Part shown: one piece after another, positions 17,976-46,800 of the stretch
Numbering within the stretch: position 1 is the first letter of the stretch
Layout: each line of letters begins with the position of its first letter
Origin: Gnetum montanum
Lineage: Eukaryota; Plantae; Gnetophyta
NCBI GenBank assembly: GCA_015680685.1
Contig: MNCI01000270.1
Coordinates: 29,062-93,061, forward strand
Direction: 5' to 3'
Length of the DNA stretch: 64,000 bases
Position numbers and translations under genes: made by a program
The notes under the pieces: generated by a model
What the model was told of the DNA's origin: nothing
The model's input: the letters and a program-made list of their open reading frames with translations, nothing else
Databases searched by the model: none

Positions 17976-18796
17976 TTAAGGAAATTTTCATAAGACAAGA
18001 AGAACATAAATGCTTCTAAGTAAAGGGAGGCTAGTATAATAGAATTTAAAAAATAAATAATAAATTTCTTACATAAAAGAAAAATCTAGACCATAGTAGG
18101 ACTTGTAATGCATGTATTTGACATTAAAAGAATTTATTTCAAAGGAACTATCAATATTCTATAATCATTACCATAATTATCTTAGCATTAATACCCAAAT
18201 CTTTGGTATCTTTCTTTATGCTTGCAAACCAAATATGTATTAGTCTACTTCATTTTGTTTTCCCTCAATTTTAAGAAAACAACCACCTCTAATAAGCATG
18301 TTCTCTAGTCTTTTATAGCAACCCCCTTTTTTCTTGGCTGTACAATTCCCTTTTTTGGCTTTAGTTAATGATAATATGATTGCCCGACCTTTACACAAAA
18401 AAGAAAAAAAAGGAAAAAAAATAGTTAGGGCTTGAAGGAGAAGGCATTCCATTGGTTTGGTATTTTGGTTTTATGCTTTCCTCTTGCACATGGTACTCTC
18501 ATCCATTATACTCTGTGGCTTTATTTTATGAGAAAATTCTAGTGGAATAAGGATTAGAGTGACTTTTCTTTAAAAATAGAGAGATTAGAAGCGTATATTT
18601 ATCTTGGAAGGAATTGAACCAAAGTCCTCTTAGTTGGAAGGGCATGTATTTTTTTTTCTTTTTTTAGGGCAGCTTTAGGAAACTTTGAACCTGAGACCTG
18701 ATTTTGGATCTTTTTTAAAAAAATGTAACAGAAAAAAACTGTAACTACCATAAAAAGTGGATTACACTAAAGAAACAAAAACTGAAACATGTCTAA

Positions 18797-19222
18797 ATCA
18801 ACCTCTAGAGGAGCAACAAAGGAAGGAAAAGGAATTGCTTTGGTTCCAACAGGCTGCTGCCTTTATGGCTTCAAAACACCAATGCGAGATTCTTGATAGG
18901 GTTCATTCCAGGATGCAATGTAGATGTGCTTGTTCCAACCTGCCCCACCATGATTAAGGGGCCCGTGTTGGTGTTGTTTGTTGGGCTGTGCTTTTTTATG
19001 TCCCATTATCTAGGACCTCGTTTCAAAATAATACACTGCCTTAAGCTTAGATAGAAAAAATAAGCTATAAAATCTATTAAGCATAAAGGTCTCGTGGAAC
19101 TCACTTAAGGGGATGGGGATACCTCCCCTATTTTTTGGATCTAGGTCCTGATTGTACATATTCTTTTATTTCAATTAATTTAATCCAACCTGACCTTTTT
19201 CCAAAAAATAAAAAATAAAAAG
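18797..19222 (+). mobile_element. L1-clade LINE copy D, short 3' fragment (C-terminal half of J-domain + tail; same subfamily as B)
   Basis: ORF 18757-18957 ..KEKELLWFQQAAAFMASKHQCEILDRVHSRMQCRCACSNLPHHD nearly matches copy B. Tail matches 5430-5520 in reverse complement. Confidence 0.85.
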
Positions 19223-19239
19223 GCTAGGCAAAATAAAAG

Positions 19240-20200
19240 AGGGGCTTGAGGTCTCCTTCTCCTGTCCTCGATAGCCACGAGTTGGAGCTATGATTTGTTG
19301 TAGAGCTACCACAAGCAATGAAGGAGGCTGCAAAGTGGGCAAGGTCGGAGGAAAGGTGCATGTGGGAGGCAAAGTGGAGTGCCCCAAAGGAAGAGTTCCA
19401 TTGGCTCACTACCCATCTGCAGACCCAATATGCTGAAAACGAGAAGGAGCTTTTGCAGAAGCGCGAGCTGCACGAAGTGGCAACAAGGGCTGCACTAATT
19501 GATGATTTGCATGTCCAGATCAAGGAATAGGTGTGATAGGATGTGCAACAGAGGGTTGAGCAAGAGCAGATGGAGCTACTGACTAAGGAGCAGGAGCAGG
19601 AGGAGGCTAAATAGTTGCAACAGCAGTAGGATATGGTGCATGCACATAATGCTCAGATGTGGCTGTGTGATGGGAGATGTCCATATGTCATTATTGACAT
19701 AAACAATAACACTTCTTGGTTGGCTCTACACCGACACATTAGGCAGTCATCGGCTAAGCTTCAACCAAATGGCAAGGGGCGTGCAACCAAGTGTGCACCG
19801 AAGGAGGGTGCTTTTAAGGAATTTCAGCAAGTGGCTACTTTTGTTGACACTAAACATCATCGTGATGTGATGCAGGTCATTCACTGTCAAGAATATCCCG
19901 ATTGTGAATGTACTAGGTTGTTAAAGAGCCTTTAGAAATTGGGTACTATATGTACCAATGTCCTTATTTGTGATGGTTTTTTCCCCAAGGCCATGTGTAT
20001 TGGCCATTTTTGACCTGTTGTGCCCAAGTGTAGGGGTACTCCTCTCTAGTTTCCTGTTTGTGGTGGTTGGTCATCTTATATAGTTTTCAGTAGATGGAGT
20101 GGGGAGAAACTCACTCGATAGCGGAGGCACATGCTTAGACACAATTTTGTTTGTACATTTTCAGGACTTAATATAATCCCGAACATTTTTAGGAAATACC
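19240..20200 (+). mobile_element. L1-clade LINE copy E, 3' fragment (coiled coil + J-domain; same subfamily as H)
   Basis: ORF 19318-19530 is the coiled coil. ORF 19633-19935 reads GRCPYVIIDINNNTSWLALHRHIRQSSAKLQPNGKG..KEGAFKEFQQVATFVDTKHHR..IH..PDCEC. Confidence 0.9.
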
Positions 20201-24596: not shown

Positions 24597-27500
24597 TTTT
24601 TTTTCTTTTTTTGAGAAATGATCAGGCAAATTATATTACAGGAAGCAAGTTACATGCAAGAATGGGCAGGGGTGAGAAACCCCCAATGCAACAAAACAAG
24701 AACCCAGTGGGGAAGGAAAACCCCTGCAACAACACCCACAAGGAAGGGGAAAGACTAGACCTGACCCTATCAGTAAGAGAACCATTGATGGCTGCAACAT
24801 GTGTCCCTCATGGCACTCAAAACCGCCAACCAAAAAACAGCAAAACCTAATATAAACACCTTTTGAGAAATGACAAAAATGTCAATTCATAGGGGGAATG
24901 GCAGCCTCTTGTAGGTATAGTGGGGCATCTACTATCCATGCACCCTGTCAACAATCTCATGCTCCTCCTCAAATAGCATAAACCCTACAGTCTCCTAAAA
25001 AATTTTGAACCTTTCCTCATGTTCGCCTTGCACCTGTTTTGCCATCTAGCACACCTTGTCAAGATGAAGAGTGCATGATGTTTGTCCGATGTACTTCTGA
25101 AGGTTGTCCCATAGAGTATCTATGTTATGCCCATCACAACATCTAGGCATCTGCCCTCTTTGAACCACATCCTGGCATTCAAGGTGAGTGTCTTATATTG
25201 GAGCTTCCTCATATTTTCATCTTCCAGGAGCTCCTTCACCCATCTAAACAACTCCTACTGCTCCTACTCCTACTCCTCCTTTTGCAACTGCTTTCTAATC
25301 CCCCGCACAACACCCCACCCCCAAAGAAAAAAAAAAAGACGATGAAGACATTGCCATGTGTGCCCTCCCCCTTCTTGCATACAGCCTAGTAAATAGTGCA
25401 ACAGCCAACCACTTGGAACATATGGCCATACAACTGGCCTAGCCACCTGCCAAAAGGCAAAAACCAAGTCGAAGCACCACCCCCATCAAGGTTGCTGAAG
25501 CACTGTGAGAAAAAACTGCAAAAGATTAATTCGTCTCCCCAACTGCAAGCATCACATGAACATGAAATGCACCTCTTGCAACTTCAAACTGTTCCCAAAC
25601 TAAATGAAGAAGCACTCCACCAACTCTGTCACCTCTTACTAGATGGATGACAAACATAAACGAGGATCCTGCCCACTAGAGGTCCTAGAGATGCTCCCTA
25701 AGAAGAATGGCACAACATCTTGTAGCCCCATGATGGTGAGCAAAATCACCTCCCCCATTGCCCAAATGATATTCCTGACAAGCTGGTTGACTTTGTCAAC
25801 CAACCCATTGTGGTGCGGCCACCACTGAGGCCACTCACCTCACCATACTTGCAAGGATTGTGGTGGCCAACGGCACTTCCCCTTTACTAGACAGAAATCA
25901 TGACATCCAATGTTTGATCTTAGCCTGCATTCTATGAATAATGCAAGACCAAGTAATTGACCATTGCCAAGCAAACATTGGAACCCCCAAAAATGCTTCC
26001 TCCTTACCCCTTTGTCCCATTCCTAGTACTTGAGGATCCCTCTTTTCATAACTAAGACAATGTGGATAAAATGGACAGCTAACGTGCCCCAATTGATGCT
26101 GAGACCCACCTCCCTACTCATCTTGTTCAATACCTTCTTGATATTTGACACTTGCAGCATTGTAGCTTTTGTCACCAAGATGGTGTTGTTTGCATAATGA
26201 TTAGTGATACACATGATGCCCTCCATCCTATAGTACATGGTCATGGTGTCCAGGACCAAGATAAATAAAAGGGAACATAATGGATCCCCTTGACGCAAGC
26301 CCCTTTGTAGGGAGGAGAACCCCCACAACTACTCATTGATATCAAATGAGAAGGCTCTAGTTTACTATATCTACAAACATAAGTTTACAAACCTAGGATG
26401 GAACCCCTTGCAGAGCATTATCTAACCAAGGGAGGTCCAATCAATTGTGTCATATGCTTGCACAATATCCAAATTAAGGAACATACCTAGGAATTCCACC
26501 CTCAATGTAGAGTGCATGAGCTCATGAAGAAGTCAGATTTCATCTCGGATGCACCTCCCCTCAACAAACTGCACCTAATAGTTCCCAATCAACAACGACA
26601 TCAATAGCTGCAAATGTCTCACCAAGACTTTGGAAAAGATACTAAGCAAGGATTTGCACACCCCAATAGGCTGAAAATCCATAGGTCTCACTAGAGTCAA
26701 GACCTTGGGCAACAAGAAAACCCTAGAACAATTGATTTTTTTTTGACTTGACCCCAATGCAACATGACATTGAATGCATCCACTAGGTTATCCCCAATGT
26801 CCTCAAAAAACTTGTTAAAGAATTCAATAGGAAAACCATTCAAGCCTGAAGCCTTCCCCACTTTCATAGTGTACATTGCTTCAAGAATCTCAACCCTTGT
26901 GATGTGTTGTAGTAGTCTTTGGTTATCCATTTGTGTAAACACCCTCTAAATCAACACTGTAATGGGGGAGGTGTCTCCCCTTTTCCATATCCTTTCCTAG
27001 AATTGCTAAATGCACTAGGCAATCTATCTTGGGTTTGTAATGCATGTTTCACCATCAAATAGCACCTCAATGTTTTTGGCCCTCTTGATGACATTGGCCG
27101 ACACAAAGAGAACTTCATATTACGGTCACCTTCTCTAAACCATCAAACCATAGAACATTCCTACCAATAAATCTCCTCCTCCATCGAGAGCCTTTGAAGA
27201 TCCTAAAGGATGAAACATTCCTCACTCTACAAAACCTTTTCCTCTTCTTGCAATTGTTGTATCATCTACAGTTTCGAAGTCCATTTGTACTTGAGAGACT
27301 TACCTATCATGCTTGGCTTATGCTCTAAATCCTTGTTTGACCTATTGAAGATTCCCTCTAAGAAACTTCCTCAAGTCATGACTACTGTAGTACACCAACC
27401 ACACCTCCTATAACAATTGTTTTAGCCAAGGTTTCCCCAACTAGGATTGCTCAAAACAAATGCCTTGGTAGCCTATGTCTCAAGGATGGTGTACCTTATA

Positions 27501-29526: not shown

Positions 29527-30990
29527 ATGGCGAGAGTAGGTGTGGGAGAGGGAGTGGGTGCCAGTGCGGGTGTGGGTGCCAACAAGGGCATCGAAGAGGG
29601 AGATGGTGGAGTGGCAAACCCACATCCTATGGTGAGCAGGGTGGGGTTGGTTGTTGGTGGGGCCGGTGGGGAGGACAGGAGTGTAGGTGCAACATTTCTA
29701 GGGGCAAGCTAGCAGTCAAGTGACAAGGGCAGTGAAGCTTGTTCCCGGATGGAGGGCTCCATGCATCTTTAGGTTCATGGGAAGCCCTACAAGGAGGTTT
29801 AGATGATGGAGAGGAGCTTGATTGGCAAGTTTGTGTTGTCGGGGGCCTACCCTAAGTTGGACCTAATTCAAAAATGGACTTTTGAAACTTGGGGTTTGGG
29901 GGAGCTTGAGACACGAAGTCTCTCAAAGGAGCTCCTTCTTTTTGTTTTCCAGTCGGTGGAGGACCACGACAAGGCCTTGTTAGGGGAGCCATGGTTTTAC
30001 CAAGCACAAGGGCTAGCACTGACACCATGGTGCCCTAGGGCTTATTAGGATATAGACTTGTTTTCTAAGGCACTTGTGTGGATTTCCATCTTAGATATTC
30101 CTTGGGAGATGTGGATGCATGAGTTCCTAAAAACACTTGTCGGGTTCTTTGGTGAGTTTATTTATTTTGACAACTTTACTGGCTCCATGGAGCAGATGGG
30201 CTTTGCTAGATTTTGTGTGTGGAGATCCCTCTCTTCCAAATATTTGATGAAGGAGATCATCTTAGAACTTCCATTGAGAGATGCAAAGATCCAAGTGGAA
30301 TATAAAAATCTGTCCAATGATAAAACAAGATCTACACCACCAAACACAGGCTGCTCCACATTGCAGCCACTTGCAGATTTAGGGGCAAATGCACCACCTA
30401 AATAGATTGTAGAATGATGGGTATGCGTGGGGCATCATGGATGTCCGATGGTGGCACCTCTAAAGAAGACTATAGAAGAACAACAATAAAAAGTACTCAA
30501 GGCCTTTGAAGATTTGCAACTATATGTTACAATAAGCATTTTCATGAAACACTAAGTCCCTACAACACAAAACTGTGAAACATTGAGGGCAAAACCGTTG
30601 GGAGATTCCCCCAGTGGCAAAGGTGGCTAATAACCTAGCACCAATGCTGGCACTAGTGGAGTTAGCCTATGGACCGATCTTGGTCAAGGGGCAATCCTTG
30701 CAGGGGAAGGGATCCTTCCAACTCCTTGATCCCTTCCTCGACGAGAAGGGGTGTGGAGCTCACCCCATTAGGTGATTGGGTGTCGATAGTCAGGGAAGCG
30801 TTGATGCCCAGAATGTCAAAAGTCTCTAATCCAATGGCAAGGGAACCTAGAAATTTTCCCCTATCACCGAGCTCAGGGAAGATGGGTAGGCCTCCTACAC
30901 CACTCACTCACGCAAGAAAACATAGATGGATATTGATTTGGGGTTGTAGCTGACCTTGAAAGAGGTCTATAAAAAATGGTCCATGGGTAA
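29527..30990 (+). pseudogene. LINE G ORF1 (DUF4283/RRM-like)
   Basis: ORFs 29803-30048 (SLIGKF...LLLFVFQSVEDHDKALLGEPWF...LTPW) and 30058-30405 (VWISILDIPWEMW...GEFIYFD...GFARFCV...VEY). Confidence 0.88.
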
Positions 30991-30993
30991 GCC

Positions 30994-33900
30994 ATGAAAA
31001 TTCTCTCCTGGAACTGTAGAGCATAGGGTACGGCCTACAAAAGAATACCCTAAAAGAGATTGCTAGAAGTGAAGATTATGATGTGATCTATCTCCAATAG
31101 ACAAAGTTGTAGCTGGCCGAATTCCATCATTTGAGGTGGGAAGGCTGGCATACGCAGTTGGTGGCTTGTCAGAGCTAGGCAGGGGGATTAGTGATTTTGT
31201 CAAAAATCACTTTTAACCTACTGGACTCTTTTGTGCGGAATATAACAATTCATATTTCTTCGACTGGGCTTTGGGTTACCAATTTCTATGGGACCCAAGT
31301 GTGGCAGGCCAGGTTGTAGGAGTTAAGCAGGGTGGCAACGTTGATGCCTAACACTGGCCGATGCGTCATTGTTAGTGACTTCAATCAACGCCTACATCCA
31401 TGGGAGAAATTAAGGGAAGACAGTAGTAGCACCCTTGGGGCTCAACAATTTCTATGGTTCTTGGAATCATATGTGCTGGTGGATATGGAGATAGAAAATT
31501 GCTACTTCACATCGAGTAATAGGAGGCGAGGCAATGATCGGGTGCTATCTAGGATTGACGAGGTGTTGGAAAGTTCAGAACTTTTCATGTAATTTGACAT
31601 CCAGGTTTTTGGGAAGGAAAGGCATGCATCATATCATCGTTCCATTGTCTACCATATGGGAGGTAGAAGATGAGACGCCACCCCCCCCCCCCCCCCCCCC
31701 CGGGGGTCCTTTTTTTTTTTTTTTTCAATTTGAGCGCTCCTGGCTCCTCAAGCCATAGCTAAGACCTCTTGTGAAGGAGACATGGGGTGGTTACCCCAAT
31801 TAGAGAGACCCACAGGATTTCCTTAGAGATGGCTTGCTCCAATTGAAATGGGTTATTCGCTCTAAAAAGATTTAAGACAAGTTCACCTTTAGAGCTTGCA
31901 AGAGGGACTTTCAACGACACCTATGGGACATTCAAGATCAGCAAGAGTCAAGGGCATGGTTAGAGAAGGAGGAGGATGTTATTCTGAGGCAGCTCCAAGA
32001 CCTCGCTGCAAAGGAAGAATTATATTGGAAGCAACAGGCTCGAGTTGATGGCGTAGGGAGGGGGACAAGAACACACAACTTTTCTTTGCTACTACCAAAT
32101 CTAAGGGACAAGCAAAGCAAACGTTCCATCTGGTGAAAAATAGATCCAATCTTGAGAACCCCCAGGTAATCGTGAAGGCAATGGGTGATTATTGGGTGAA
32201 CATATGGGGCAAAGGGCACACACTTCCAGTTTCAATATAGGTGCAACTTGTGTTAGGAGAAGAGAAGAACCGTTTGCTGTTGGCCCCTTTCATGATGCAG
32301 GAGTTGGACACAGCCATGATGTCAATGAAGGCAGATAAGGCTCATACCCCAGATGGCTAGAACATTAAGATTTTCAAGGGGTTTGCGGATCTACTCGAGC
32401 AAAATGTGTTGGATGCTTTCAATCTGATGTTATGGAGGCGGCAAGTTCGACAGGAGCTTAATTGCTCCAAGATTGTCCTCATCCCCAAGCAACCCAACCC
32501 AACGAATTCAATGCAATTTCAGCTTATCAGTGTTTGCAATGTTCTGTTATGTGTTTTCACTAAGATGCTGGTCTAGCATTTGGCCCTGATGATATCAAAG
32601 CTGGTAGAAGAACATCAAGCAAGCTTCATCATAGGTAGATTCTTATAGGACCAAGTGATCTTGATGCAAGAAGTTCTTCATGTAATGCAAGAGGAGGGTT
32701 TTTTTGGGATGTGCCTGAAACTTGACATTACAAAAGCATATGATACAGTGAACTAGGAGGCTCTTTCCACAATTATGATTAACAAAGGTTTTGATTCCAG
32801 ATTTGTCAATTTGTGCATCTAGTTGTAGGTGTTGGGAGCATATTCTAACATTGGTGTGAAGCTCTAGGGGTTCTCCTCCTCAAGTAGGGGTCTTCAACAA
32901 GGAGATTTGCTTTGCCCTTAATCATAATGGATACCCTGCAACTATATTGCAAGGCAAAAGGTGTTAGAGGGCTTGAGATTGTAGGGGTGGAGTGCTTAGC
33001 GCAACACTATGTTGATGACACTATTCTACTTTCATGGGCTATTGTGCCACAAGCTATGGTGATTGACTACGCTCTCAAACGTATGGCCTTGGAGGTAGGA
33101 TTAGAAATTAACCATGGCAAGTCAACCCTTCACTTGCTTAATGCTGATGCTCGAGTGGGGCACAAAATTTCACAAGTACTAGGGATTCTTTAGGGTATGG
33201 CATAGGATTCCTATTTAGACATCACTCTATTTGAGTGGGAGAGAAATCGTAATTGGTCCCAAATGGTGCAAAAAATGGAATACCAGATTGGACATTGAAC
33301 TAATCATTTCCTTACTCAAAAAGGGCAAGTAATGCTTGCTACAATAGTTTTAGCTGCCATGGCCCAGTTCACGGCCTCTGTGGCTTCTCCTCCTAAGGGC
33401 ACTATCAAGAAGATTGATTAGCTAGTTCACAACTTTATTGGTTAGGGGGTAAAGGGGGTAATCGTATACATCTGGTCTATTGAGAGACTATTGCGAGAGC
33501 TAGGGATGCTAGAGGCCTAGGAGTTTTGAAATTTGAAGACAAAATAATGATGGGCAATCAGAGACTAATTAACCATCTATTACAAAATCAAGACGGGGCG
33601 CTCAATGGATTAAAATTATGGATGGTAAGTATAGGCGTTGGGAAGCAAACCATCAGGATTCATCGATATGGAGAACACTTTGCAAACATGCATAGGTTTT
33701 GCTAAGGGGAGGCTTGCTGGGGTCATCGTTGCAGCAACTTATTGAGGCAAAGTATCCTGAGTTGACGAATGGGCAAAAATTTGGAAGGGATGGCTACAAG
33801 AAAAGCCTAAGGTTTTCATTTGGCTTACTAGGCATGATGTGCTTCCAGTGCAGGCTATCCTACATAGGAGGGGGTTAAGTATTAATGATAGTTGTCCATT

Positions 33901-35521
33901 ATGTTTCAACAACCCCAAGACCATGGAACACTTTGTATATCAATGTCCATATGTGGTGGACACTTGGCGAGCTACAATGCTTTGGGCTCATGCAAATTTG
34001 AGTGGTTACTCCACAGTGACGATGGGTCTCTGGGCACTTTGGAAGATTCAAAATAGCACAATCTTTAGGTCAACGTGACCTTATCCACCGGAACAAGCTA
34101 CGACAGTTGGCATTAGACTTTGGAGGGAGGCAATTGTCACTATGGGCAGAATGCGCACATTCTAGCTAGCGTGTACAACATACCATGCAAATCCGGAGCT
34201 ATGGTGGCTTGTGGAGCATGTTGGATGGGCCGAGGTCCTCACTCAGCTAGAGGGGGCCCTAGAGTTGGCCGCTAACTTGTTTTCTCCAACTGGGCCAAGG
34301 ACGTTACATTTTTTCATGAAGTTCAAATTAAATTGACAAAGGTCATGATTGCACACTATCTTGGGATCTCAGCAATGGGGGAAACTATGATCCCAGCAGA
34401 GCGGGGTTTCTAGGATGCCGAAGCCTTTTTTAATGGTGCTGTTCCGAGAACAAGTAACGACTAGGTGCCAAAATCAATGCTCTTGCAGCTATGGTAACAG
34501 GCAACGGACCTCGTGGACCAGTTCCTAATCCAATTAGGCAATGCTTGGAAGTTACAAAGCACACACTTCACCCTAATGAAGTGCATGCATTTGGGCCGTG
34601 GGGTGAACTTGCCCAAGTTTTTCCTGACCTCACTTTAGCAGCAACGCCAGGGACACCACTTGGGTTTGATTTTGGCATTGTGGCGGGTTGCTTCCCTAGT
34701 TGTGCCGTCATCAACACCCACGACCTCATGCAAAATGGTCTATACCTATAGGCCGAGGAAACCCCAGAGAGGGTTCCCTGTGCTGGGGCCAAAAGGTTTG
34801 TCTGTGTTTGAAGGGGAAGGAGCAGGATTTGGGAGGTTCCCCTCTCCAGTCCCCGGCAGCTAGGAGACTAGGCTACAGCGAACTGAGGAGCTACTGCAGG
34901 CAATGGAGGAGGCCATCGAGGAGGCAAGAGAGGAGGAAAGACAAGTATGGGAGGATAAGTGAAGCACTTGGAAGGCGAAGTTTCAATGGATGACCACACA
35001 ACTGCAAACCCAATATGCTAAAAGAGGGAAGGAGTTGTCGCGAAAGCATGAGCTTCATGACACAATGACCAAGGTAGCTTTGATCGATGATCTACAGGCC
35101 TAGATCAAGGAAGGGATGATGCAAGAAAGGCAATAGAGGGCTAAATAGGAGCAGCTCGACCTATAGGGCAAAGGAGTGGGAGGGGGAGGAGGCAGAACAA
35201 CTGTAGAGGCAGCAAGATAAAGTGCACGCCCAGAATGCCAAGATGTGGCTACGAAATGGGAGATGCCCATTTGTCATTCTAAACATAAACATCAATATAA
35301 CTTGGTTGGCCCCACGTAGAAATATTAGAAGATCTTCTGCTAAACTTCATCTTGATGGCAAGGGGGATGTTGGGAAGTGTGCACAGAAAGAAGCTGCATT
35401 TAAGGAATTTGAGTAGGCGACTGTGTTCGTGGACACTGAACATTATCGGGAGGTGTTGCAAAATATTCATAGTTAGGAATATCCTAATCGTAAATGTTCT
35501 ACGTTATCAAAGCATCTTTAG
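30994..35521 (+). pseudogene. LINE G ORF2: APE - RT - zf-RVT - Transposase_32-like - coiled coil - J-domain
   Basis: MKILSWNCR, SDFNQ, LSRID (APE). KLDITKAYD, GLQQGD, HYVDD (RT). CPLC..ETMEH-like zf-RVT at 33839-34078. Frame continues through deamination-type stops and two frameshifts to the stop at 35519-35521. Confidence 0.85.
35264..35450 (+). other. J-domain (DnaJ-type) coding segment within LINE ORF2
   Basis: CPFVILNININITWLAPRRNIRRSSAKLHLDGKGDVGKCAQKEAAFKEFExATVFVDTEHYR aligns by eye to the J consensus PYEVLGV..NAS..EIKKAYRKLALKYHPDKN....AEEKFKEI.EAYEVLSD..KR. Confidence 0.8.
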
Positions 35522-35681
35522 TTTGTGGGTACTATAGGTACCCCTATCCATGTTTTTGTGAGGATGTTTTATCATGGGGCTAGATGTGGGGCACAATTTT
35601 TGACCTAGTGTACCTATGCATGAGGTCATCCTTCTCTATGTTTCTGTTTTGATGTGGTTTGTAGTCTGTCTTACCTATTTA

Positions 35682-35890
35682 GGCAAGTGGAGGGGAGAAG
35701 TCCCCCCTTTCGACAGAGGGGACACCTCCGCAAATATTTTTTGTACGTGTAGTCTTTCTATTTTCTTTCTTTTAATATAATCCCAATGCAAGTGGAGGGG
35801 AGAAGTCCCCCTTTTCGATAGAGGGGACACCTCCCCAGATATTTTTTGTATGTACAATCTTTCTATTTTCTTTCTTTTAATATAATCTTG
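35682..35890 (+). repeat. Tandem duplication (~105 bp) of the LINE G 3' terminal unit
   Basis: GCAAGTGGAGGGGAGAAGTCCCC..TTTAATATAATC occurs at ~35683 and ~35788. Confidence 0.9.
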
Positions 35891-35994: not shown

Positions 35995-38900
35995 TTTTTT
36001 TTCTGAAATGTCTGGGATTATATTAAGTAAAGTCATAAAATGAACAAACAAAATTGTGTCTAGGGATATGCCTCCCCTATCGAGAGGGGGTTTCTCCCCC
36101 CTCCATTTGCTGAAAACTATATAAGATGACCAACCACCGCAAACAAGAAACCAAAGAGTGCCCCTACACTTGGGCACAACAAGTCAAAAATGGCCAGCAC
36201 ACATGGCCCCAAGGAAAAAACCATTACAAACAAGGACATCGGTACATAATAGTACCCAATTTCTAAACGCACTTTGACAACCTACTACATTCACAATTGA
36301 GATATTCCTAACTATGAATGACCTACAGCACATCACGATGATGTTTAGTGTCAACAAAAGCAACCGGCTGCTGAAATTCATTAAAAGCAATCTCCTTCTA
36401 TGCACACTCGGCTGCATCCCCCTTTGCCATCTAGATGAAGCTTAGCTGATGACCGCCTAATGTGTCGATGTAGAGCCAACCAAGAAGTGTTATTGTTTAT
36501 GTCCCTAATGAGATAGGGACATCACCCATCATGCAACCACATCCAAGCATTATGTGCATGTGCCTTATCCTGCTACAGCTGCAATTGTTTTGCCTCCTCC
36601 CACTCCCACTCCTTAGCTAGCAGCTCCATCCACTCCTACTCAGCCCTCTACTACTCTTCTTGTTGCAGCTACTCCTTGATCTGGATGCGCAAATCATCCA
36701 TCAGTGCTACCCCTGTCGTTGCTTCGTTCAACTCACACTTCCACAAAAGCTCCTCCTTATCAGCATATTAGGTCTCATAATGGAGCATATTAGGTCTCAT
36801 AATGGGCAATGAACTGCTGGAACTCTTCCTCTTCGACACTCCACTTTGCCTCCCACATGCACCTTTCCTCCCACCTTGCCCTTTGCAACCTCCTCTGTCA
36901 CTCACTACAGTTATGCAACCAATCACAACTCCAGCACTTGGCTACTAAGGACATAAGGAGACCTCCCCAACCCCGCTCCTTCCCCCTCCACTGCAAAACC
37001 CCACCCCTACGCCAAAGCATCCCTTAGGAAATCTAGGTTCCTACACAAGTAAACCATCCTGCACAAAGCTGTAGTCGCAATCGGCAGAGCAACCGAAGTA
37101 GCTACCCGCCACAAAGCCAGAATCAACCACAAGTGGCAACCTCGACGCTATCGCTAAAGTGTCACCAAGAAGAATCTCAGAAAATTCATGCCACACCCCA
37201 ACCCCATGCACTTCAATAGGGTGATGCATGTGCTCTGTGACTTCCAACCATTACCAAACTAGACCAGGAAACAATCCACAAGCTTTGCCACCTGTTGCCA
37301 TAGCAACACCAACTTCTATACTTGGCCACTACTCGTTTTTGGGACCACGCCACTAGACAAGCCTTCAACACCCTGTAGGTCATGCCTTGTAGGAAGCATA
37401 GTTTTCCCCATCGCTGGGATTCCAAGGTACTGCATAATCGCAGCCTTCATCAACTCAACTTGAACTTCGCAAAAGGACATAACATCCCTAGCCCAATTTG
37501 AGAAAAATGGACCTTCAACCGGCTCAGGGCCACCCTCCAGTAGAGAGAAGACCTCAGCCCATCCGACTCACTCCACCATCCGCTAGAGCTTTGAATTCGC
37601 CTGATAAGCCATACACAAAGGCTCAAAAGTTGGCGTTACTCCCATTGTGACCATAGCCTCCTTCCAAAATCTAATAGCCATAGCCGCTACCAATGCCAGT
37701 GGAGGAGGCCACACCGACCTGAAAATTGTGCTATTCTCGATCTTCCAGAGAGCCTAGAGAACTACCATCACCTTAAAATCTTCATTCAAATTTGCATGGG
37801 CCTGAATTGTCGTAGCTCACCAAGTGTCCACAACATAAGGGCATTGGTATAAAAAGTGTTCAATCGTCTCAGGGGTGTTGGAACATAACGGATGACTATC
37901 ATTAATGTTTACATGCCTCATATGTAGGACAACCCGCATCAAAAGTGCCACATGTCCTATTAGCCAAATGAAAACCTTGAGCTTTTTCAGCAGTCGTCCC
38001 TTCCAAACGTTCCTCCATCCATCAACATGAGGATATTTAGTCTAAATAATCTACCATTGTGACACCTCCAACAAACCTCTCCTCATCATATCCTATGCAC
38101 ACTTGCAAAGTTTTCACTAGATGGGTGATGCCCGATGATCTGCTTCCCAACATCTATACTTGCCATTCATAATTCTAATCCATTGAGCTGCCCCCTCATC
38201 ATGCTATAAGATCCAATTAATTAATCGCAGATATCCCTCATAACTCCAAGACCCCAAGCTTCCCTTGGTCTCATTGTAGTCTCCCAACATACCAAATGCA
38301 TATGATTACCCCCTTTACCCCTTGACTAGATTCGAACCAACTGATCAATCTATATTATAATACCAATAGGGGAAGAAGCCACAAAAGTCGTGAGATGGGC
38401 CATGGTAGCTAAAACCATCATAGCAAGCATCACCTGACTCTTCCAAGTAAGGAAACAATTTTACCAATGCCCGATTCGGTGTTCCATTTTCTGTACCATC
38501 TTCGACCAAGTTTGATTCCTCCCCCAATCAAAAAGAGGGATACCTAAGTAGGAATTCTGAGCAGTACCCCGAAGAATCCCCAACACTTGAGAAATTCTAC
38601 TTCCAACTCTAGCATCAACATTGAGTAGGTGAAGGGTTGACTTCCCCCTATTAATTTCTAATCCCACCTCCAAAGCCATTCGACAAAGTGCCCAATCAAT
38701 CGCCTGAGCTTGTGGCACCGCCACCTACAAAAGCAACATAGTGTCATCTGCATAATGTTCCGCTAAGCACTTCACCATAGCAATCTCTAACCCTCTAACT
38801 CCATTTGCCTTGCAATATAGCTGAAGGATATCCATCACTATAATAAAAAGTAGGGGAGATAGTGGATCTCCCTGCCTAAGCCCCTTGCCAGGGGAGGAGA

Positions 38901-40558
38901 AACCCCAAAGCCTACCCCCAATATCAAAAAAGTAAGCTCTCGACTCTTGTAGCTGGATGCATAGATTCACAAAACTAGAATTAAATCCCTTTTGAATCAT
39001 AATCGTCGAAAGAGCCTCATAGCTAATTGTATCATACACTTTCGTAATGTCCAACTTCAAGCACATTCCAAGAAACCCTACCTCCTGCATCAAGTGAAGA
39101 ACCTCCTACATCAAAATTACTTGGTCTTGTAAGAATCTATCTCTGATGAAACCTGCTTGATGTTCCCCCACCAACTTTGGCATAAGCAGGACCAACCATC
39201 AAACTAGCATCTTTGTGAACACTCGAAGCAAAACATTGCAAACACCAATCGACCAAAATTGTATAGGATCCCTAGGGTTGGGCTGCTTGGGAATCAAGAC
39301 AATCCTAGAACAATTAATCTCCTATCAAACATGCCTCCTCCATAACATTAGGTTAAAAGCATCCAACATGTTTTGCCCCAATAGATCCGCAAAAGCCTTG
39401 AAAAATTCAATAGTCCAGCCATTTGGACCAAGGGCCTTGTCTGCCTTCATCGATGCCATTGCCACATCCAACTCTTGTAGCATGAATAAGGCTAGCAGCA
39501 ATTGGTTCTCATCTTCTCCTAACACTCTTTGCACTTGTTTAGAGAGCGGTAACGTGTGTCTCTTGTCCTAGATTTTAGCCCAATAATCACCCATCACCTT
39601 TGTGATTTCTTGAGGGTCTTCAAGAGTCAAGCCATTTTGCACCAAACTGAGCATTTGCTCATTTCAACTAGAGCAAACCTTCCCTAAGAAAATCCCATGG
39701 GTCTCCCTAGTTGGGCTAACATTCCCAAATCTCCTCCACAAGAGGTCTCAACTAGGGTTTGAGAAGCCAAGAACATTCAAATCAAAAAGGAGGGGGAGGT
39801 CTCTTCTTCAGCCTCCCTAGATGGAAGACAATGGAACGATGATCGAACGCTTGCCTTTCCTTCCCAGAAACTTGGATATCAAGCTACATCAGAAGGTCCA
39901 AGCTCACCCACACTTGATCAATTCTAGACAAAACCCAATCCTTTCCCCTCCTCCTATTAATCCATCTGAAACAACAGTCTTTTATCTCCATATCCACCAG
40001 GTCATATGATTCCAAGAAAAACAAAAACTACTAAGCACCAGGGGGATCACTATTATTCTTGCCAGATTTTTCCCAAGGATGTAAACATTGATTGAAACCT
40101 CCAACAATGAGCCATTTGCACCTGTTAGGCACCAACGATGCCACCATCCTTAGCTCTTGCAATTTGACCTCCCACAGTTCGGCCCCATAAAAATTGATAA
40201 CCCAAAGTCCAGACAAAATTATGTATACTATTATACTCCAAACAAAAGAGTCCACCAAGTTAAAAGGGACTCTAGACAAAACAACTAAGCCCCCAACCCA
40301 ACCCTGACAGCCAACTAGTTGTGCATGCCATCCTTCCCACCTCAAATAGTGGAATTTAGTCTGCTGCAACTTTGTCTCCTAGAGATACACCATGTCACAA
40401 TCTTCACTCCTAATCATCTCTTTCAAGGTATACCCTATCCCCTACAATCCCATGAGAAAATCCTCATGGCTTACCAGCCGACCTTTTTTTTTTTTATAAA
40501 CCTCTTTCAAGGTCAGCTGCAACGCCAAATCAATATCCATTTGTGTCTACTAGCCTTG
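35995..40558 (-). mobile_element. L1-clade LINE copy H (end of ORF1 + complete decayed ORF2 with J-domain)
   Basis: APE in ORF 40031-40369 (QQTK..GGFN). RT in ORF 38725-39093 (KLDITKVYD, GLRQGDPLSPLLF, HYADD). J-domain ~36330-36525 (CPYLIRDINNNTSWLALHRHIRRSSAKLHLDGKG). Poly(T) on plus strand at 35995-36002. Confidence 0.92.
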
Positions 40559-40881: not shown

Positions 40882-43805
40882 TGATGAGGACATCACCCAA
40901 CCCCTGTATAATCCTCCATGTATCTTGAATATGTTTGTCTTGTTTATGTGTCTTCTTGTGTTGATCTTTTGATGATGATTCCAGGGTGTTTTGCCATGTG
41001 TGTGGGTGTTTTGGACTTATTTTGATGAGTCTAGGAGATTTCGGGGCTATGGGCACCTATTTGGAGGTATCCGAAGGTTCCAATCCTCAAAACAAGCATC
41101 TTTGTGTTTTGCCCTTGTAGGTGAGACGTCCCAACTACAGGTGAATCTTGTAAGGTCAAGTTCTTTTTTGGTAGTTGACTACCAATTTATTTGAAAGGCT
41201 AGGGTTTGGAGTGAATTGCTTCAAATTTACACTTTTATGTTGAAGTTTGGTGTTTTCTCTGAATGAAAGGAACATTGTTGTGGATATTTGTGCATTTTCT
41301 TTTGGATATCATTCTTGTTGCTTTAAGTTTTATCTTTAGATCTATGAAAGGTATGGCTCTTAAAAAGAAGACAAATCAAGAGCTTGGACAAGAGATTCAA
41401 GAGCTCAAAGGCTCCTTTAAGGCATTTGTGACTGAAATGCAAGAAGTTCTTCTCAAAGTCAAGGCCTACGAGCACCAAGATTTCCGAAAAACTTCAAGAA
41501 GAAGGAATATGGAGAAATTCAAGACTGACTTGGGAAATATTTTGAGGAGAATTGAGAGAATATCTTCTAGCCATCAAGGAAAGAAAGAAGATGTAAGGTC
41601 TAATGAGGTAGAGATCAATGAGAAAAGGAGTTCTCAAACATCTCTTATTGGGCAAGGGAATGCTCAATACTCTAGGGTTTCAAGAGAAGGAACCAAGAGC
41701 TTCATCAAAGGGACCAAGAAATCTTCAAAGTCCAAGATGGTGTATGTTGCTAATCAAAGAGAGTTCCTACCTCATAAGTCATGGGAGGTGAAAGATCAAA
41801 GCCAAAGGAGTGCAAAGATCAAGGAATTTCTTAAAGGAGGATCAAAGGTAGCACTAGAAGGTATGAAACTCATTCTTTTTGCAATTGTCCTATACCTTGT
41901 GGCAAGGGAAAAAAGATTCGAAGCCAAGTTCAGGCTATCTCATGGGAGAGAGGTGAGTCTTCTAGCCAAGGTAAGTGAAAGAATGATTGCTTTAATGATG
42001 TTTTTAATGAAATTGATGTTAAAGCCATGGAGGAGAGTTTACCTTTTGAGCTAGTCCCTCTAAAGTGGGATGAAGAGCTTGCTTATGATTCCCTTGAAGA
42101 GGAGATGCCATTGGGATTGGGATCTCCTATTTGGGATCTTGAACCTTCAAGCTTTGATGAGATTGGACAGCCACATGTTGAAGATCAAGTTGAACCAAAG
42201 ATGGCTAGGAGAAGCCATGAAGAGGTAAGTAAGTCTAAGCTTTACCTTGTTGATGGTAGTAATGTCTCTCATGTTGAAGCTACTGTTATGGATGCTAGTA
42301 TTTCACTTCAGCTTGATAGTGGTTTCTTCAATGGTAATGATGAGCATCATGATCATTGTGTTGATTATGATAAGAATGAGAGTCCTGTTGTGACTTCTGA
42401 TACCATTGTTAGTGAGAGCAGAAGTAATAATGGTAATTTGTTTGATGATGGTGGCTATTGGGATAGTCATTATGAGAAGATCATTATTGATGTTAGTGAA
42501 AATATTAGTAGTGATAACTTTGATTGTCTTGGGTGTGAAATGGATGAGAAGCATGAAGGCAATCTCCATTGTTGTGCTAATGATGAAAGGAAGCTGAGTG
42601 ATAGTCTTCCACACACCAAAAGGAAGAAGGTGAAGAAGAGAAAAAAGAAGGAAAGAAAGGATGTTGGCTTAAGGAGCCTAATCCTTTTGCTTTTTCTTAT
42701 TCTTTATTTGTTGCAGGTTTGAGTCATCATGGGGATGCAAGGGAATTATTCCAAGGAGACACTCAATTGAAGGAAGCATGGTGGGGAATGAGGACAAGCC
42801 TCCATTAGCAAGAGAAGCCCAAAACCAAAACCTCAAGTGATACTCATTCTCATGATTTTTTTGATGCATTGAGTTTTGATTGTTATGCTAAGAATGATGG
42901 CCTTGAGTCATGGGAGCATGGTGCCTTCCAGCTTGTGAAAGGTCATTAAGCATGACATTTTAAGGGTGGGAGAGATGATGAGGATGTCACCCAACCCTTG
43001 TCTAATCTTCAATGTATCTTGGATATGTGTGTGCGTCTTCTTGTGTTGACCTTTCGATGATGATTCCAAGGTGTTTTGCCATGCTTGGGGGTGTTTTGGA
43101 CTTATTTTGATAAGTGTATGAGGTTTCGGGGGCTATGGGGACTTATTTGGAGGTGTCCAAAGGTTCCAGACCTCAAAACGAGCATCTTTGTGTTTTGCCC
43201 TTGCAAGTGAGACGTCCCAACTGCATTTTAGACATCCCAGTTGTTAACAACCATTTTCAAATGAAATGTCCCATTCTTCTCTGAGACGTCCCATGCAGAT
43301 TGTAACAAACATCAAATTGAATGGCAAATCGGAGGGAAAATGAAAGGTCACACCAAGAAGCTATCAATAAGAGTGCAAGGAAGAAGGCTAATCAAGCTAA
43401 TTAGAAGGTAGAAGGTTAGTCTCAAGGAGAACAGAGATTTGAGAAGTCTCTTGAGAGCTTGTGCAAGAAAAGAGCTTCTACAAGAAGAGTTTGAGTGAGA
43501 GGCAAGGGAGAGCACTTGAGAAAGGTTAAGAGAATATCTTATAAGTGTCTTGTCTTGAGCTTTAGCTCCATTGTGAGCAAGTGAGGATTGAGAGGGGACA
43601 TGTGTGGTCTCTAAGAACCTTGGGAGAGGTGTGAGTTGAGCTTAGCTCCTCATCTTTGATGTAATTCTTTACATTTTAAGAGTTTTCTTATAAAAAGGGG
43701 AATTTTCTCCAATTCATTGTCTTGTTCTTGCTTCTACATTTAATTTTGCTTAGGGAGGTTGTGGAATGGATCCTTTTGTTGTCTATTGAGGTAGGCTTCA
43801 CATCA
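40882..43805 (+). mobile_element. Non-autonomous CRM-related LTR element (no pol)
   Basis: TGATG...CATCA termini with TSD GGACC/GGACT. Partial 5' LTR 40882-~41140, PPT AAGGGTGGGAGAGA, 3' LTR 42976-43805. LTR start and PPT match the gypsy element at 57940-63308. Confidence 0.88.
41263..42722 (+). CDS. Gag-derived ORF pair of the non-autonomous element (263 aa + overlapping acidic 231 aa)
   Basis: MALKKKTNQELGQEIQELK resembles the gag N-termini at 63308 and 3991. The remainder is Lys-rich then Asp/Glu-rich, with no recognisable pol motifs. Confidence 0.45.
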
Positions 43806-46800
43806 GGACTGCCCGCGATGTTGCATAGTCATAAAAGCAACCACCTCTTGGAATTCCTTGTACTTATCTTCACTTTTCTATCTATCCTTAGGTGGCAAAG
43901 TTTGAGTCCTATCTAGGTGGAACTTAGTTGTAGTAGCCCAAACATGATGACGCAAAGTGGTCCCCGCAACATTCTTGTTGATACCCATCACCACATAAGG
44001 ACATCACCCTTTCCTAAACCAGCAGCAATCATCAGACTCATGAGCAACGTCTAGCCTACTCTACATCTGTTGTTTGTTCTTTGAGGAGGGCTCAAACCTG
44101 CTACTCCTCGTCCTCCTCAGCCAACTTCCTCTCCTACTCTTCCCTGACCAAATACTCCCAAATCTATCTCCACAGCTGATCTTCCAACTCATTCCTCATG
44201 ACAACTTCCCACAATTCTCTCTGTCTTTTTTCTTCCTTACCCTCTTCCCTACAACACTAGCTTTCCTCCATTGCCCTAGTTTGGTCTTGCTGGTCCCGCT
44301 TAGGAAGCTCTGCCTCCCACTTCGCATGCCCCTCCCTTCACACCCTAGCTTTGATTTCAATCATTATCCTGCAAAGCTCTTCATTAAACTTGACCTACAA
44401 CTCCTAATCCAAGGCTTCTTGAACTAATAGAATTTGCTCTCCCACCTCTAGAGGCTAAGTCGTAGCAAAGGTAGACCCCTCCCCTGATCGCACCACGTCT
44501 ACCTGCAGCATAGGGACTGAGGAAGAAGCCCCCTCAATGGGCCTACACCATTTGTAGACTACTGTGAAGGCAAGGGCCTAATGGACACCAGATCAACCGG
44601 CTGCACTACCCTCCAAAGAGCCAAGATCAAACCATAGTGCCTCCCCCGCCTTTCCCACTAGAGAGAGGCCAAGAAGAATTTAGGAATGCTAACCAATCTA
44701 TTGAACTACATGCATCTCAAAAACACAAAGTGAACACCTTGCAGTTTCCAAACATTCCTAGACTAGACAAAGTATCTGTCAACCAGCTCTATAGCCTCCT
44801 ACCAGAGTGGTGGGAGCTCCGACCTCAGAAACTAGCCACTAGCAGTCTTCAGAACTAGCCCCTTAAAGAAACCCTCCGCATCTTGCAGCCCCCATCCAGA
44901 TGGTAGCACCACCTCCCCCACCGCAAGCACTCCAAGGTATCCCACCAAATCGGTCTTCGAAGACTAATGCGCATTATCCCCCCTCCAACACTTGTAGAAG
45001 TTCACATCCACAAGATCCAAATCCACCACCAATAATGGTAGCAAGTCCTCCCATCCCATCTTGACAAGCAAAGCCCACATGTCCCTATTATTGCAAAATC
45101 CATCCACATCAAGCTCATGTGTCGAGGTTACCCCCATCATCGCAGTTGCTTCCTTCCATAGCCATTTGGCCAAGAGGGCTGTGAGTAGTATTGAAGGGAG
45201 CGGTGCAAAATCGTTGCATTTCTTGCATTCTAGATACATCACAACATCGTCATGGCAAGCAAGTCCTTGTGCGCCTATAGAATCAAGGGTTGTCAACTGC
45301 TTGTCCAACATTAGAAGCTTAGGGGCAGTGCACAAACAAGTGTTGCATGGTTTCAATGCATGCACTACAACAAGGGCAATTGTCCACATTAATAATCCCA
45401 TGAACCTTCAAGTAAGCACAAACAGGTAGTGCGCCCTGCATCAGAAGCCAAGAGAAACATTTAATTTTCCCTGGAAGTCGTCCCTTCTGCACAGGTCACT
45501 AGCTGTCCTCTGCAAGATATTGATAAGTTCATGCAGTTGGATCCCCATCATCCCCCCTTGAGTTATTTTGTAGGCATAGTTGCATAGGTTGCACCATATG
45601 TACGAGTCCCCACAGGCCACCACCCAAGGTTGGTATTTGTTAACCATGATGCATGCCCACTAAAGATGACACCTGTGGTCATGCATGAACCTTTCGATAA
45701 TTCTCTAGTACCATCAAAATGATGTCTTCAAACTTAAGGACCCCCAAACCCTCAACAAGCTTAGGTTTGGCCACCTTATCCTAGCAAACCAAGTGTAAGC
45801 ATTCTCCCCCTTTTTCCCCAGACCACATAATGCTCCATATAATTTGGTTGACTTTGTTGATGATGCCCACCGATGGTGCAGCAACAGAAGAAACATATCT
45901 AGTGATGGACAAAAGGACATATGTAACCAAGATGAGCTTACCTTTCCTTCTTAGAAAATGCATAGTCTAGTGACCCACCCAAGATTGGAGCTCCTGAATC
46001 AAACGGGTCCAAGTCACCACTCTACCCCAGGCAAACATGGAAACCCCAAATAAGAGTCCTAAACTGTACCCTACAAAATTCCAAGTTCCTAACAAACTTC
46101 TTGTTGGATAGACCCTTCAATATGAAAAAAGTGTATTGTAGATTTCCCTCGGTTTGACTACAGGCCAACCTTATTTGCCATCCTTTCCAGAGCCCTATTG
46201 ATGGCCAGGGCATGTGGTATGGTTGCCCTCGTCATAAGGATTCTATCATCAGCATAGTGTTCAATGATGCAAGTGACTCCCTCAATGTTCAAACCTCTGA
46301 TCCCCTCTTCCCTGCAATAAAATTTCATAGTATCCATCACAATGATAAAAAGATAAGGGGAGAAAGGATCACCATGACAAATCCCTCTAGCAAGGGAGGG
46401 GAACACCAAAAGCCTCCTGAACAAGTCAAAGGAGTAGGCTCCCTAGGCTTGAAGGTTCATACACAAGGCCACAAACTTCGGGTAGAGTCCCTTCATGAGC
46501 ATGATTTCTTGGAGAGTATTGCATTGAACAATATCATAGGCTTTAGCAGTATCAAGCTTAATTCATATACCATGGAACCTAGTTCATTGTATGGAGTACA
46601 TAGCTTTCTGAAGCAACAAGATCTGGTCTTGGATGAATCTCCCCTTACTAAAAACAACTTAGTGAAGGCCAACAAGATCCAGCATCAATGGCTGAAGTCT
46701 ATGAAAAAGGATTTTGGTGAAGAGCTAGAGCAGCATGCTACAGACCCCAATCAGTCTGTAGTGGGCTGGCAACGTTGGGTTGAACCTCCAAGTCAACCTC

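Follow-up and report, generated by a model that had tools for sequence, protein, structure and literature searches.

A lineage of plant L1-type LINEs whose coding region ends in a diverged J-domain-like module

The J-domain of the DnaJ/Hsp40 co-chaperones (Pfam PF00226) is the module that switches on Hsp70 chaperones, with an HPD tripeptide in the loop between helices II and III of a four-helix fold that contains an antiparallel helix II/III hairpin. A selfish genetic element may encode such a domain, as the large and small T antigens of polyomaviruses carry an N-terminal J-domain with an HPDKGG loop by which host Hsc70 is used. In other proteins, e.g. Pam16/Tim16, a helical domain derived from the J fold has a degenerate HPD. 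Among LINEs, the acquisition of foreign domains downstream of the reverse transcriptase (RT) in ORF2 has been described for plant L1 elements with an archaeal-type RNase H (Smyshlyaev 2013, cited in PMC5203782) and for insect R1/TRAS elements with a C-terminal SF1 helicase (PMC4686597, PMC5563155). Non-LTR retrotransposons are thought to depend on host chaperones, but they are not known to encode the recruiting module themselves, and no paper describing a LINE-encoded J-domain was found in the literature searched.

We analysed a stretch of 64,000 nucleotides of Gnetum montanum (GCA_015680685.1, contig MNCI01000270.1, positions 29,062 to 93,061 of the forward strand), referred to here as the window, in which positions are counted from its first letter. 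A sequence-only reading of this stretch had claimed that eight LINE copies end in the same module of about 95 amino acids, that a ninth carries its C-terminal half, that one copy keeps an intact HPD, and that the module is a J-domain with which the element recruits host Hsp70. The observation held: the nine decayed copies (A to I) are present at the stated coordinates, about 250 nt before the 3' end of the element, and the shared consensus motifs are visible in an alignment of the window copies (A1). The interpretation was supported only in part, as set out below.

A tblastn search with the one stop-free copy (E, 19633-19932, 100 aa) recovered A at 581-814 (-; E 6e-19), B at 5763-6050 (-; 5e-16), C at 13812-14087 (+; 6e-20), G at 35222-35518 (+; 7e-37), H at 36272-36560 (-; 2e-32, with one frameshift), I at 43818-44021 (-; 8e-9), F at 24938-25179 (-; weak and frameshifted) and D at 18757-18954 (+; C-terminal half only, matching B at 2e-18), and no further copies were found in the window. 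The copies are not close duplicates. Nucleotide identity is 0.85 for E-H, about 0.71 for G against E and H, and 0.37-0.64 for the other pairs; the shared protein pattern is therefore far more than chance repetition. The features of the copies are the following.

30049..30402 (+): copy G, ORF1 remnant with DUF4283 (PF14111, E 5e-10).
33761..34075 (+): copy G, zf-RVT, the C-terminal zinc-binding region of plant L1 ORF2 (PF13966, E 2e-14).
34243..34860 (+): copy G, conserved unnamed 'X' domain (motifs YLG-I/V-PAMGE, FGNxWKLQ, PKFFL, LILALWRV) between zf-RVT and the charged region, conserved by tblastn in A, B, F, H and I, followed by an in-frame TAG at 34861-34863.
34864..35200 (+): copy G, charged, probably helical or coiled-coil region directly upstream of the module, with a conserved A-M-E-E-A start motif at about 34897; same frame as the X domain; matches E 19387-19509 at the protein level (E 2e-13).
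35222..35521 (+): copy G, J-domain-like module plus Cys-rich tail, reading W-L-R-N-G-R-C-P-F from 35245 and ending at the stop at 35519-35521; HLD at 35348-35356; two internal stops.
35522..35887 (+): copy G, 3' UTR and a 105-bp terminal unit present twice (35683-35887), the unit ending in TTAATATAATCCCAAT; a related 3' end follows copy E at about 20090-20185.
36272..36572 (-): copy H, module, tail to tail with G; HLD, one frameshift, three to four stops.
36900..38041 (-): copy H, zf-RVT (37820-38041; E 9e-15) running on in one frame, with no frameshift, through the X domain to LILALWRV; none of its stops is shared with G.
38728..39105 (-): copy H, reverse transcriptase segment (RVT_1, E 1e-10).
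19237..19935 (+): copy E, 5'-truncated LINE with the charged region (ORF 19318-19530) and the stop-free module ORF (19633-19935, QPN in place of HPD) in the same frame.
18757..18957 (+): copy D, C-terminal half of the module (second subfamily) with its stop; an A-rich tail lies at about 19205-19236.
566..835 (-): copy A, module with intact HPD (719-727); X domain, charged region and module share one frame over 560-1470.
5751..6062 (-): copy B, module (HPN), second subfamily; its X domain lies at 7383-7927.
13800..14099 (+): copy C, module (HLD).
24926..25191 (-): copy F, badly decayed module (HLD); its X domain lies at 25498-25635.
43752..44033 (-): copy I, module (HLD), the best single hit in the window of a J-domain HMM; its X domain lies at 44562-44948.

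The presence of RVT_1 followed by zf-RVT, together with a DUF4283-type ORF1, identifies the elements as L1-clade plant LINEs, of which the module is the last coding segment. In line with this, 5'-truncated copies share a common 3' end: E starts at about 19237 inside the extension downstream of zf-RVT and D is shorter still, yet both keep the module, its stop and a 3' UTR of roughly 250 nt. The piece at 40034-40378 (-) lies where the APE-type endonuclease should be and matches G 31179-31589 by eye, but it gave no Pfam hit at E<=1. Pfam searches with 13 pieces of the X domain and the adjoining region gave no credible hit, the only match being at chance level (DUF525, E 0.1).

The module is very probably a diverged J-domain, the homology being supported at the profile level. 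Profile A1, built only from window copies, found 18 PDB sequences at E<=10, of which 14 are J-domains; the four best (DNAJC5 twice, DNAJB2 and a DnaJ-related entry, 2ej7) score E 0.004-0.03 and align full-length in register. With a profile of the core only (A4) the top 14 hits are all J-domains (best E 0.003). Comparison of A1 with 32 DnaJ J-domains by hhalign gave a probability of 90.3% (E 1.5e-6) over 63 columns covering DnaJ residues 5-67, across all four helices and with H(P/L)D on HPD, and 73.6% against E. coli DnaJ alone. The real score of 39.9 compares with a mean of 5.1 and a maximum of 11.1 in 200 column shuffles, and with 12.9 for the reversed profile. Reciprocally, a DnaJ J-domain HMM run over all six frames of the window ranked copies I, B and A first, second and third. 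No single copy, however, reaches Pfam's threshold for DnaJ: the best piece scores E 0.14, nothing approaches the gathering score, and the intact E ORF gives nothing at E<=10.

AlphaFold models of the whole E ORF and of the core only, made from a shallow alignment of decayed fragments, have a pLDDT of 68 and a pTM of 0.37-0.39; the first places helices at 18-22, 28-42, 58-71 and 74-87, which is the J-domain order, and the helix lengths fit as well. Foldseek returned no match at E<=10 for the first model and only three weak, unrelated rows (E 7-9) for the second, and VIA-align, with the first model only, gave a best Z of 4.3, none of the matches being J-domains. The absence of a J-fold match, the failure to meet Pfam's curated threshold and the best database E-values of only about 0.003 could suggest that the resemblance is convergent or spurious, and that the module is a lineage-specific helical C-terminal domain without J-domain ancestry. 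We consider this quite unlikely, since the top-ranked hits are almost exclusively J-domains in register over four helices, the shuffled and reversed controls fall far below the real score, the reciprocal scan recovers the module copies, and the H-x-D loop, the K-x-H spacing, the F-K-E-F motif of helix III and the R-x-x-I-L-D motif of helix IV all fall on their J-domain counterparts.

Searches for relatives outside the window gave no intact element and no protein homologue. A protein homology search with the E ORF found nothing, and profile A1 gave 0 hits at E<=0.001 in 1.84 billion proteins, which says nothing about novelty, as proteins of the organism seem absent from the collection (a Ty3/gypsy integrase from the window finds only 50-60% identical angiosperm proteins). 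The E ORF likewise found no relative in a metagenome collection.

The substitution pattern points to purifying selection on the module. Same-family pairs have pN about equal to pS, whereas between families pN/pS is 0.195/0.573 (E-G), 0.345/0.871 (E-C) and 0.424/0.809 (E-B). A nucleotide-only alignment shows the same codon-position bias, with 53/37/68 differences at positions 1/2/3 (p=0.01). We therefore rejected the idea that the module is a passively transduced fragment of a host gene, because it shows coding-type constraint across families.

Only copy A keeps HPD. Of the eight copies that cover the site, A reads HPD, B HPN and E QPN, and C, F, G, H and I read HLD, so that three have Pro and five have Leu. 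Within the E/G/H clade parsimony favours an HLD ancestor, and among part of the places at which reads differ from G no T>C at 35352 appears, which is weak evidence but leans against Pro being dominant in G's own family. These observations raise the possibility that the module descends from a J-domain but is now merely 'J-like', active elements carrying HLD or another non-HPD loop that no longer stimulates Hsp70, and that it serves instead as a helical or Cys-His structural or binding module of the LINE protein. The conserved Cys before P-Y and the C-terminal CxC with conserved His residues suggest such an added function. On the other hand, A and B, from the two deepest lineages, keep the identical His-Pro codons (CAC CCT), and the Pro/Leu base is a CHG cytosine, prone to deamination, with C>T at CHG running at 0.26 per lineage against 0.056 for T>C, i.e. 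about five times more frequent. Parallel hits at such hot spots are common in these copies, e.g. the same Gln codon was turned into a stop in C, G and H. We regard the J-like alternative as unlikely, but not as negligible.

Reading frames run on without a shift from zf-RVT to the X domain (H), from the X domain to the charged region (G), from the charged region to the module (E) and from the X domain to the module (A). Nevertheless, an in-frame TAG followed by GAG lies at the junction of X domain and charged region in four families (G, 34861; A, 1172; B, 6408; I, 44404), and could be a real ORF2 stop. A conserved ATG (A-M-E/K-E-A) lies 8-13 codons downstream in A, E and G, and RNA reads from a related copy also carry the TAG (loose end at 34880). 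The charged region and the J-domain might thus be a separate third ORF downstream of ORF2, or be reached by stop-codon read-through, instead of being a constitutive C-terminal part of the reverse transcriptase protein. We rate a conserved stop as less likely than a CAG hot spot: at that codon E has CAC and H has CAA, as expected if the ancestor was CAG (Gln), CAG is itself a CHG hot spot, and parallel CAG>TAG hits are seen at other codons. With about one stop per 30-40 codons in these copies a stop near any given point is not rare, and all parts share one frame. A separate ORF or read-through is rather unlikely, though less so than the J-like alternative.

The explanation that we favour, and hold to be somewhat more likely than not, is that an old lineage of L1-type plant LINEs acquired an extension of roughly 480 aa after the zf-RVT region of ORF2, consisting of an unnamed conserved domain, a charged, probably coiled-coil stretch and, at the very C-terminus, a diverged J-domain followed by a short CxC tail. 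In this view, the J-domain was kept by purifying selection while the lineage split into families that now share only 40-55% nucleotide identity, and, the window copies being dead, the stops and most of the HPD-to-HLD changes are best read as later cytosine-deamination damage. The element's own protein would then bring host Hsp70 to itself in cis, most likely to fold, assemble or remodel the large ORF2 protein or its RNP. What the analysis itself establishes is the repeat, its position, the profile-level homology to J-domains and the coding-type substitution pattern, whereas HPD in active copies, a J fold of the protein, fusion to ORF2 in one polypeptide, and the recruitment and stimulation of Hsp70 are inferred. 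There is no evidence here for the suggestion of the sequence-only reading that chromatin silencing is altered. More tentatively, and with slightly less than even likelihood, active members may make an ORF2 protein, or a read-through or ORF3 product, with a working HPD J-domain, in which case the retrotransposon would carry its own Hsp70 co-chaperone and use the host chaperone in cis for RNP assembly, reverse-transcriptase activation or escape from silencing.

A LINE lineage that kept a J-domain through long diversification would be direct evolutionary evidence that access to Hsp70 limits LINE propagation. It would also offer, as the module with and without HPD, a natural handle on the chaperone dependence of target-primed reverse transcription. 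For annotation, decayed copies of the module could be miscalled as DnaJ-like gene fragments.

Compared with the J-domain of the DnaJ/Hsp40 co-chaperones, about 65 residues of the module align in register with helices I-IV, including the Y-x-x-I/L-x-I start, a Lys two residues before His, the H-P/L-D loop, F-K-E-F in helix III and R-x-x-(I)L-D in helix IV. The module is very diverged (14% identity to the DnaJ profile), Pro is replaced by Leu in most window copies, there is the extra Cys before P-Y and the CxC tail, and it sits at the C-terminus of a putative retrotransposon protein rather than in a cellular chaperone. With J-like proteins such as Pam16/Tim16 it shares, in five of the eight copies, a degenerate HPD, although the degeneracy may here simply be post-insertion decay. 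The viral J-domains such as that of the polyomavirus T antigen are the nearest precedents for a selfish element encoding its own J-domain, the loop being HPDG-K/R-G here; that of T antigen is N-terminal and belongs to a DNA virus of animals, whereas the present module is C-terminal and belongs to a plant non-LTR retrotransposon. Finally, as in the plant L1 elements with RNase H and the R1/TRAS elements with a helicase, a foreign domain appears to have been added downstream of RT and kept across a LINE lineage. No RNase H was seen in the present copies in a search that was not exhaustive, the putative J-domain comes with two further segments, the X domain and the charged region, and it would add to LINE biology a new class of acquired domain, a chaperone cofactor rather than a nucleic-acid enzyme.

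The stretch 35245-35521 is one copy, designated G, of a repeated coding module. It begins W-L-R-N-G-R-C-P-F, ends at the stop codon at 35519-35521 and contains two internal stops. One copy of the module, E, is a stop-free ORF of 100 aa, and a tblastn search with this ORF as the query recovered all of the copies that had been listed in the sequence-only reading, at the places indicated there, with E-values ranging from 7e-37 down to marginal for the wrecked copy F. The observation made in that reading thus holds, including the intact H-P-D of copy A at 719-727. The copies are:

Copies of the module (coordinates and strand)
A, 581-814 (-)
B, 5763-6050 (-)
C, 13812-14087 (+)
D, 18757-18954 (+), C-terminal half only
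E, 19633-19935 (+), the stop-free ORF used as query
F, 24938-25179 (-)
G, 35222-35518 (+)
H, 36272-36560 (-)
I, 43818-44021 (-)

The copies could be sub-divided into two groups, A, C, E, G, H and B, D, F, I. They are old, as the nucleotide identity is 0.85 between E and H, about 0.71 between G and E/H, and 0.37-0.64 for the remaining pairs.

Copies G and H are two LINEs that lie tail to tail, and their recognizable parts were identified by comparison with Pfam, except where matched by eye.

Parts of the LINE copies G (+) and H (-)
ORF1 remnant, DUF4283: G 30049-30402; H not seen
Endonuclease-position piece: G 31179-31589 (matched to H by eye); H 40034-40378 (no Pfam hit)
RVT_1: G 32888-33190 (RT-like by eye only); H 38728-39105
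zf-RVT: G 33761-34075; H 37820-38041

Between zf-RVT and the module lies about 1.1 kb of sequence that is conserved at the protein level in A, B, F, G, H and I. It contains a conserved domain of roughly 200 aa, here called X, followed by a charged, probably helical region. The X domain carries the motifs FFxxWxxD, YLG-I/V-PAMGE, FGNxWKLQ, PKFFL and LILALWRV, and a comparison of 13 pieces with Pfam returned no match, although by eye the stretch 'LT.E.L..YLG.PA.GE' does recall the plant mobile domain. The domain was located in six LINE copies, at:

34243-34860 (+), copy G
36950-37567 (-)
7383-7927 (-)
1310-1744 (-)
44562-44948 (-)
25348-25785 (-)

No X domain or RT was found for copy C, which may be due to an assembly gap (run of N) at 12515-12871, upstream of this copy. 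Copy B has about 900 nt more than G between LILALWRV and the charged region (about 6450-7380 (-)), including short tandem repeats with units of 17-37 bp (7206-7324), and this is either an insertion or a family-specific segment. The stop of the module is followed by about 250 nt of 3' UTR that ends in a shared terminal motif. The 3' terminus of the LINE is formed by a 105-bp unit (35683-35887, and 36095-36180 (-)), which contains a G/C-rich hairpin, ends in TTAATATAATCCCAAT and is tandemly doubled where G and H meet; a related 3' end follows copy E at about 20090-20185. Copies E and D are 5'-truncated and retain only this 3' part of the element, as is typical of LINEs, and E begins right after the A-rich tail of D. 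Just beyond the 5' end of LINE H two long overlapping open ORFs were found (41263-42722 (+); 263 and 231 aa, Lys/Glu/Ser-rich).

The reading frame runs on without a shift in four places:

H, from zf-RVT through the X domain (38041 down to 36900)
G, from the X domain through the charged region (34243-35200)
E, from the charged region through the module to the stop (19246-19935)
A, from the X domain to the module (1470 down to 560)

The stops in G and H lie at different codons, and consequently arose after insertion. This favours a single ORF2 with an extension of roughly 480 aa. However, an in-frame TAG followed by GAG is present at the junction of the X domain and the charged region in four diverged families (G, 34861-34863; A, 1172-1174; B, 6408-6410; I, 44404-44406), and a conserved ATG lies 8-13 codons downstream in A, E and G. 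The TAG is either a parallel CAG>TAG hot spot or a genuine ORF2 stop or read-through site. At the same codon E has CAC and H has CAA, in line with an ancestral CAG, and CAG is a CHG site of the kind that mutates fast in these copies. A true ORF2 stop, implying a separate ORF3 or read-through, is therefore considered possible but rather unlikely.

We then asked whether the module is a J-domain. At the level of single copies the evidence is against this: neither the E ORF nor the 64-aa piece of G matched the Pfam DnaJ family even at E<=10, and of 17 pieces scanned one matched, at E 0.14. All searches used stop-free pieces of the copies as they stand, or X at the stops, rather than a consensus, repaired or ancestral sequence. 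At the level of profiles the picture is different. An alignment of 19 stop-free pieces (A1) was made without any J-domain information, and an hmmsearch of the resulting profile against all PDB sequences returned 18 sequences at E<=10, 14 of which are J-domains. The best were DNAJC5 (0.0038 and 0.0075), DNAJB2 (0.0089) and 2ej7 (0.033), followed by Thermus DnaJ2, E. coli DnaJ and DNAJA3, and all align over the whole domain with the H-L/P-D of the module on HPD. A core-only alignment (A4) gave J-domains as the top 14 hits, with a best E of 0.0032. Comparison of A1 with E. coli DnaJ 1-77 by hhalign gave a probability of 73.6%, and with an alignment of 32 DnaJ J-domains a probability of 90.3%, an E-value of 1.5e-6 and a score of 39.9, where profile columns 16-79 cover DnaJ 5-67, i.e. 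helices I to IV. As controls, 200 column shuffles of A1 scored 5.1 +/- 1.7 with a maximum of 11.1, and the reversed profile scored 12.9. In the reverse direction, an HMM of the DnaJ J-domains run over all six reading frames of the window ranked copies I, B and A as hits 1-3, in register.

The spacing also fits without gaps. Twenty-six residues separate the Tyr of P-Y-V-I from the His, as they do Tyr7 and His33 in E. coli DnaJ, after which come a loop that is longer by 2-3 residues, F-K-E-F on F-K-E-I, and R-x-x-I-L-D on K-R-x-x-Y-D. Structure prediction did not help with this question: two AlphaFold models, based on an alignment made of decayed fragments, both have a pLDDT of 68; the first places helices in the J-domain order (18-22, 28-42, 58-71, 74-87) but is not compact, and neither Foldseek nor VIA-align (the latter for the first model only) found J-domains. 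Overall, we consider a J-domain ancestry of the module very likely.

The HPD motif itself is variable among the copies. His is present in 7 of 8 copies, Asp in 6 of 8 and Pro in 3 of 8.

Codons and residues at the HPD position
A: CAC CCT GAT, HPD
B: CAC CCT AAC, HPN
E: CAA CCA AAT, QPN
C: CAC CTT GAT, HLD
G: CAT CTT GAT, HLD
H: CAT CTA GAT, HLD
I: CAC CTA GAT, HLD
F: CAT CTT GAC, HLD

The base that distinguishes Pro from Leu is a cytosine in CHG context. The mutation spectrum in the alignment of E, G and H (19420-19982, 35008-35570 and 36223-36773) is strongly deamination-driven, with per-lineage rates of C>T of 0.22 at CG, 0.26 at CHG and 0.085 at CHH, against 0.056 for T>C. Identical nonsense changes recur in independent copies: the same Gln codon after I-H-x is a stop in C, G and H, and the Arg codon before C-P-Y is a stop in H and I. 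With these rates, and treating the copies as independent, an ancestral Pro is about four times likelier than an ancestral Leu. In addition A and B, on the two deepest branches, share identical His-Pro codons. On the other hand, parsimony within E/G/H gives HLD, and, as a weak indication, T>C at 35352 is not among 40 of the 391 differing places in the read pile-up on G. We regard HPD in the active ancestors as probable, a judgement that does not extend to G's own family.

Whether the module had been in use was examined by comparing differences at the three codon positions within and between families.

Differences at codon positions 1/2/3 and pN/pS in pairs of copies
E-H, same family: 8/8/9 and 9/8/4; 0.141/0.26 and 0.153/0.102
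D-B, same family: 7/9/8; 0.142/0.208
E-G, between families: 25/18/37; 0.195/0.573
E-C, between families: 35/26/58; 0.345/0.871
E-A, between families: 26/24/44; 0.326/0.746
E-B, between families: 43/30/65; 0.424/0.809

Pairs of the same family differ about equally at all codon positions and thus decayed neutrally after insertion, whereas between families there is an excess at the third position and pN is well below pS. The charged region behaves in the same way. Since these alignments were protein-guided, the count was repeated on a nucleotide-only alignment, which gave 53/37/68 for E-G (p=0.01), 58/32/59 for H-G (p=0.009) and 43/26/28 for E-H, the latter without an excess at the third position. 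The module therefore evolved as a constrained coding sequence while the LINE lineage diversified, which rules out a passively carried gene fragment.

Contigs of low-coverage DNA runs from the source species and from a sister species pile up on the module at word depths of up to about 380, whereas single-copy pieces sit at about 10. Oligo-dT RNA reads cover the module thinly, on both strands and mostly at under 90% identity. The family is moderately abundant, and relatives are transcribed at a low level, but this copy essentially is not.

Full-text literature searches revealed no LINE or other retrotransposon described with a J-domain, and a large survey of L1 domain variation across 503 genomes mentions RNase H and ORF1 variants but no DnaJ (PMC5203782). 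Searches of protein collections were equally silent, but this carries no meaning as these collections appear to lack the organism: for a Ty3/gypsy LTR retrotransposon at 59264-63352 (-), which has several long open pieces including an integrase ORF of 252 aa, the best database relatives are only 50-60% identical and stem from assorted angiosperms.

The best-supported reading of the mechanism is that the protein of the element carries a C-terminal J-domain, which would dock host Hsp70-ATP through helix II and the HPD loop and trigger hydrolysis, so that Hsp70 clamps onto nearby segments of the same protein or RNP. The repeated module, its position in the LINE, its profile-level similarity to J-domains and its coding-type constraint were observed in the sequences, whereas the state of HPD in active copies, a single ORF2 polypeptide, the binding of Hsp70, any activity of the domain and its benefit to the element are inferred. 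The interpretation put forward in the sequence-only reading, namely a J-domain with which the LINE recruits host Hsp70, is in this respect partly supported, and its alternative, an interference with methylation readout, has no support in these data. For a polypeptide that we estimate at more than 1,500 residues, and that must assemble on its own RNA, the likeliest gain would be in folding, assembly or remodelling, by analogy with the chaperone dependence of hepadnaviral RT and with the J-domain of the T antigen.
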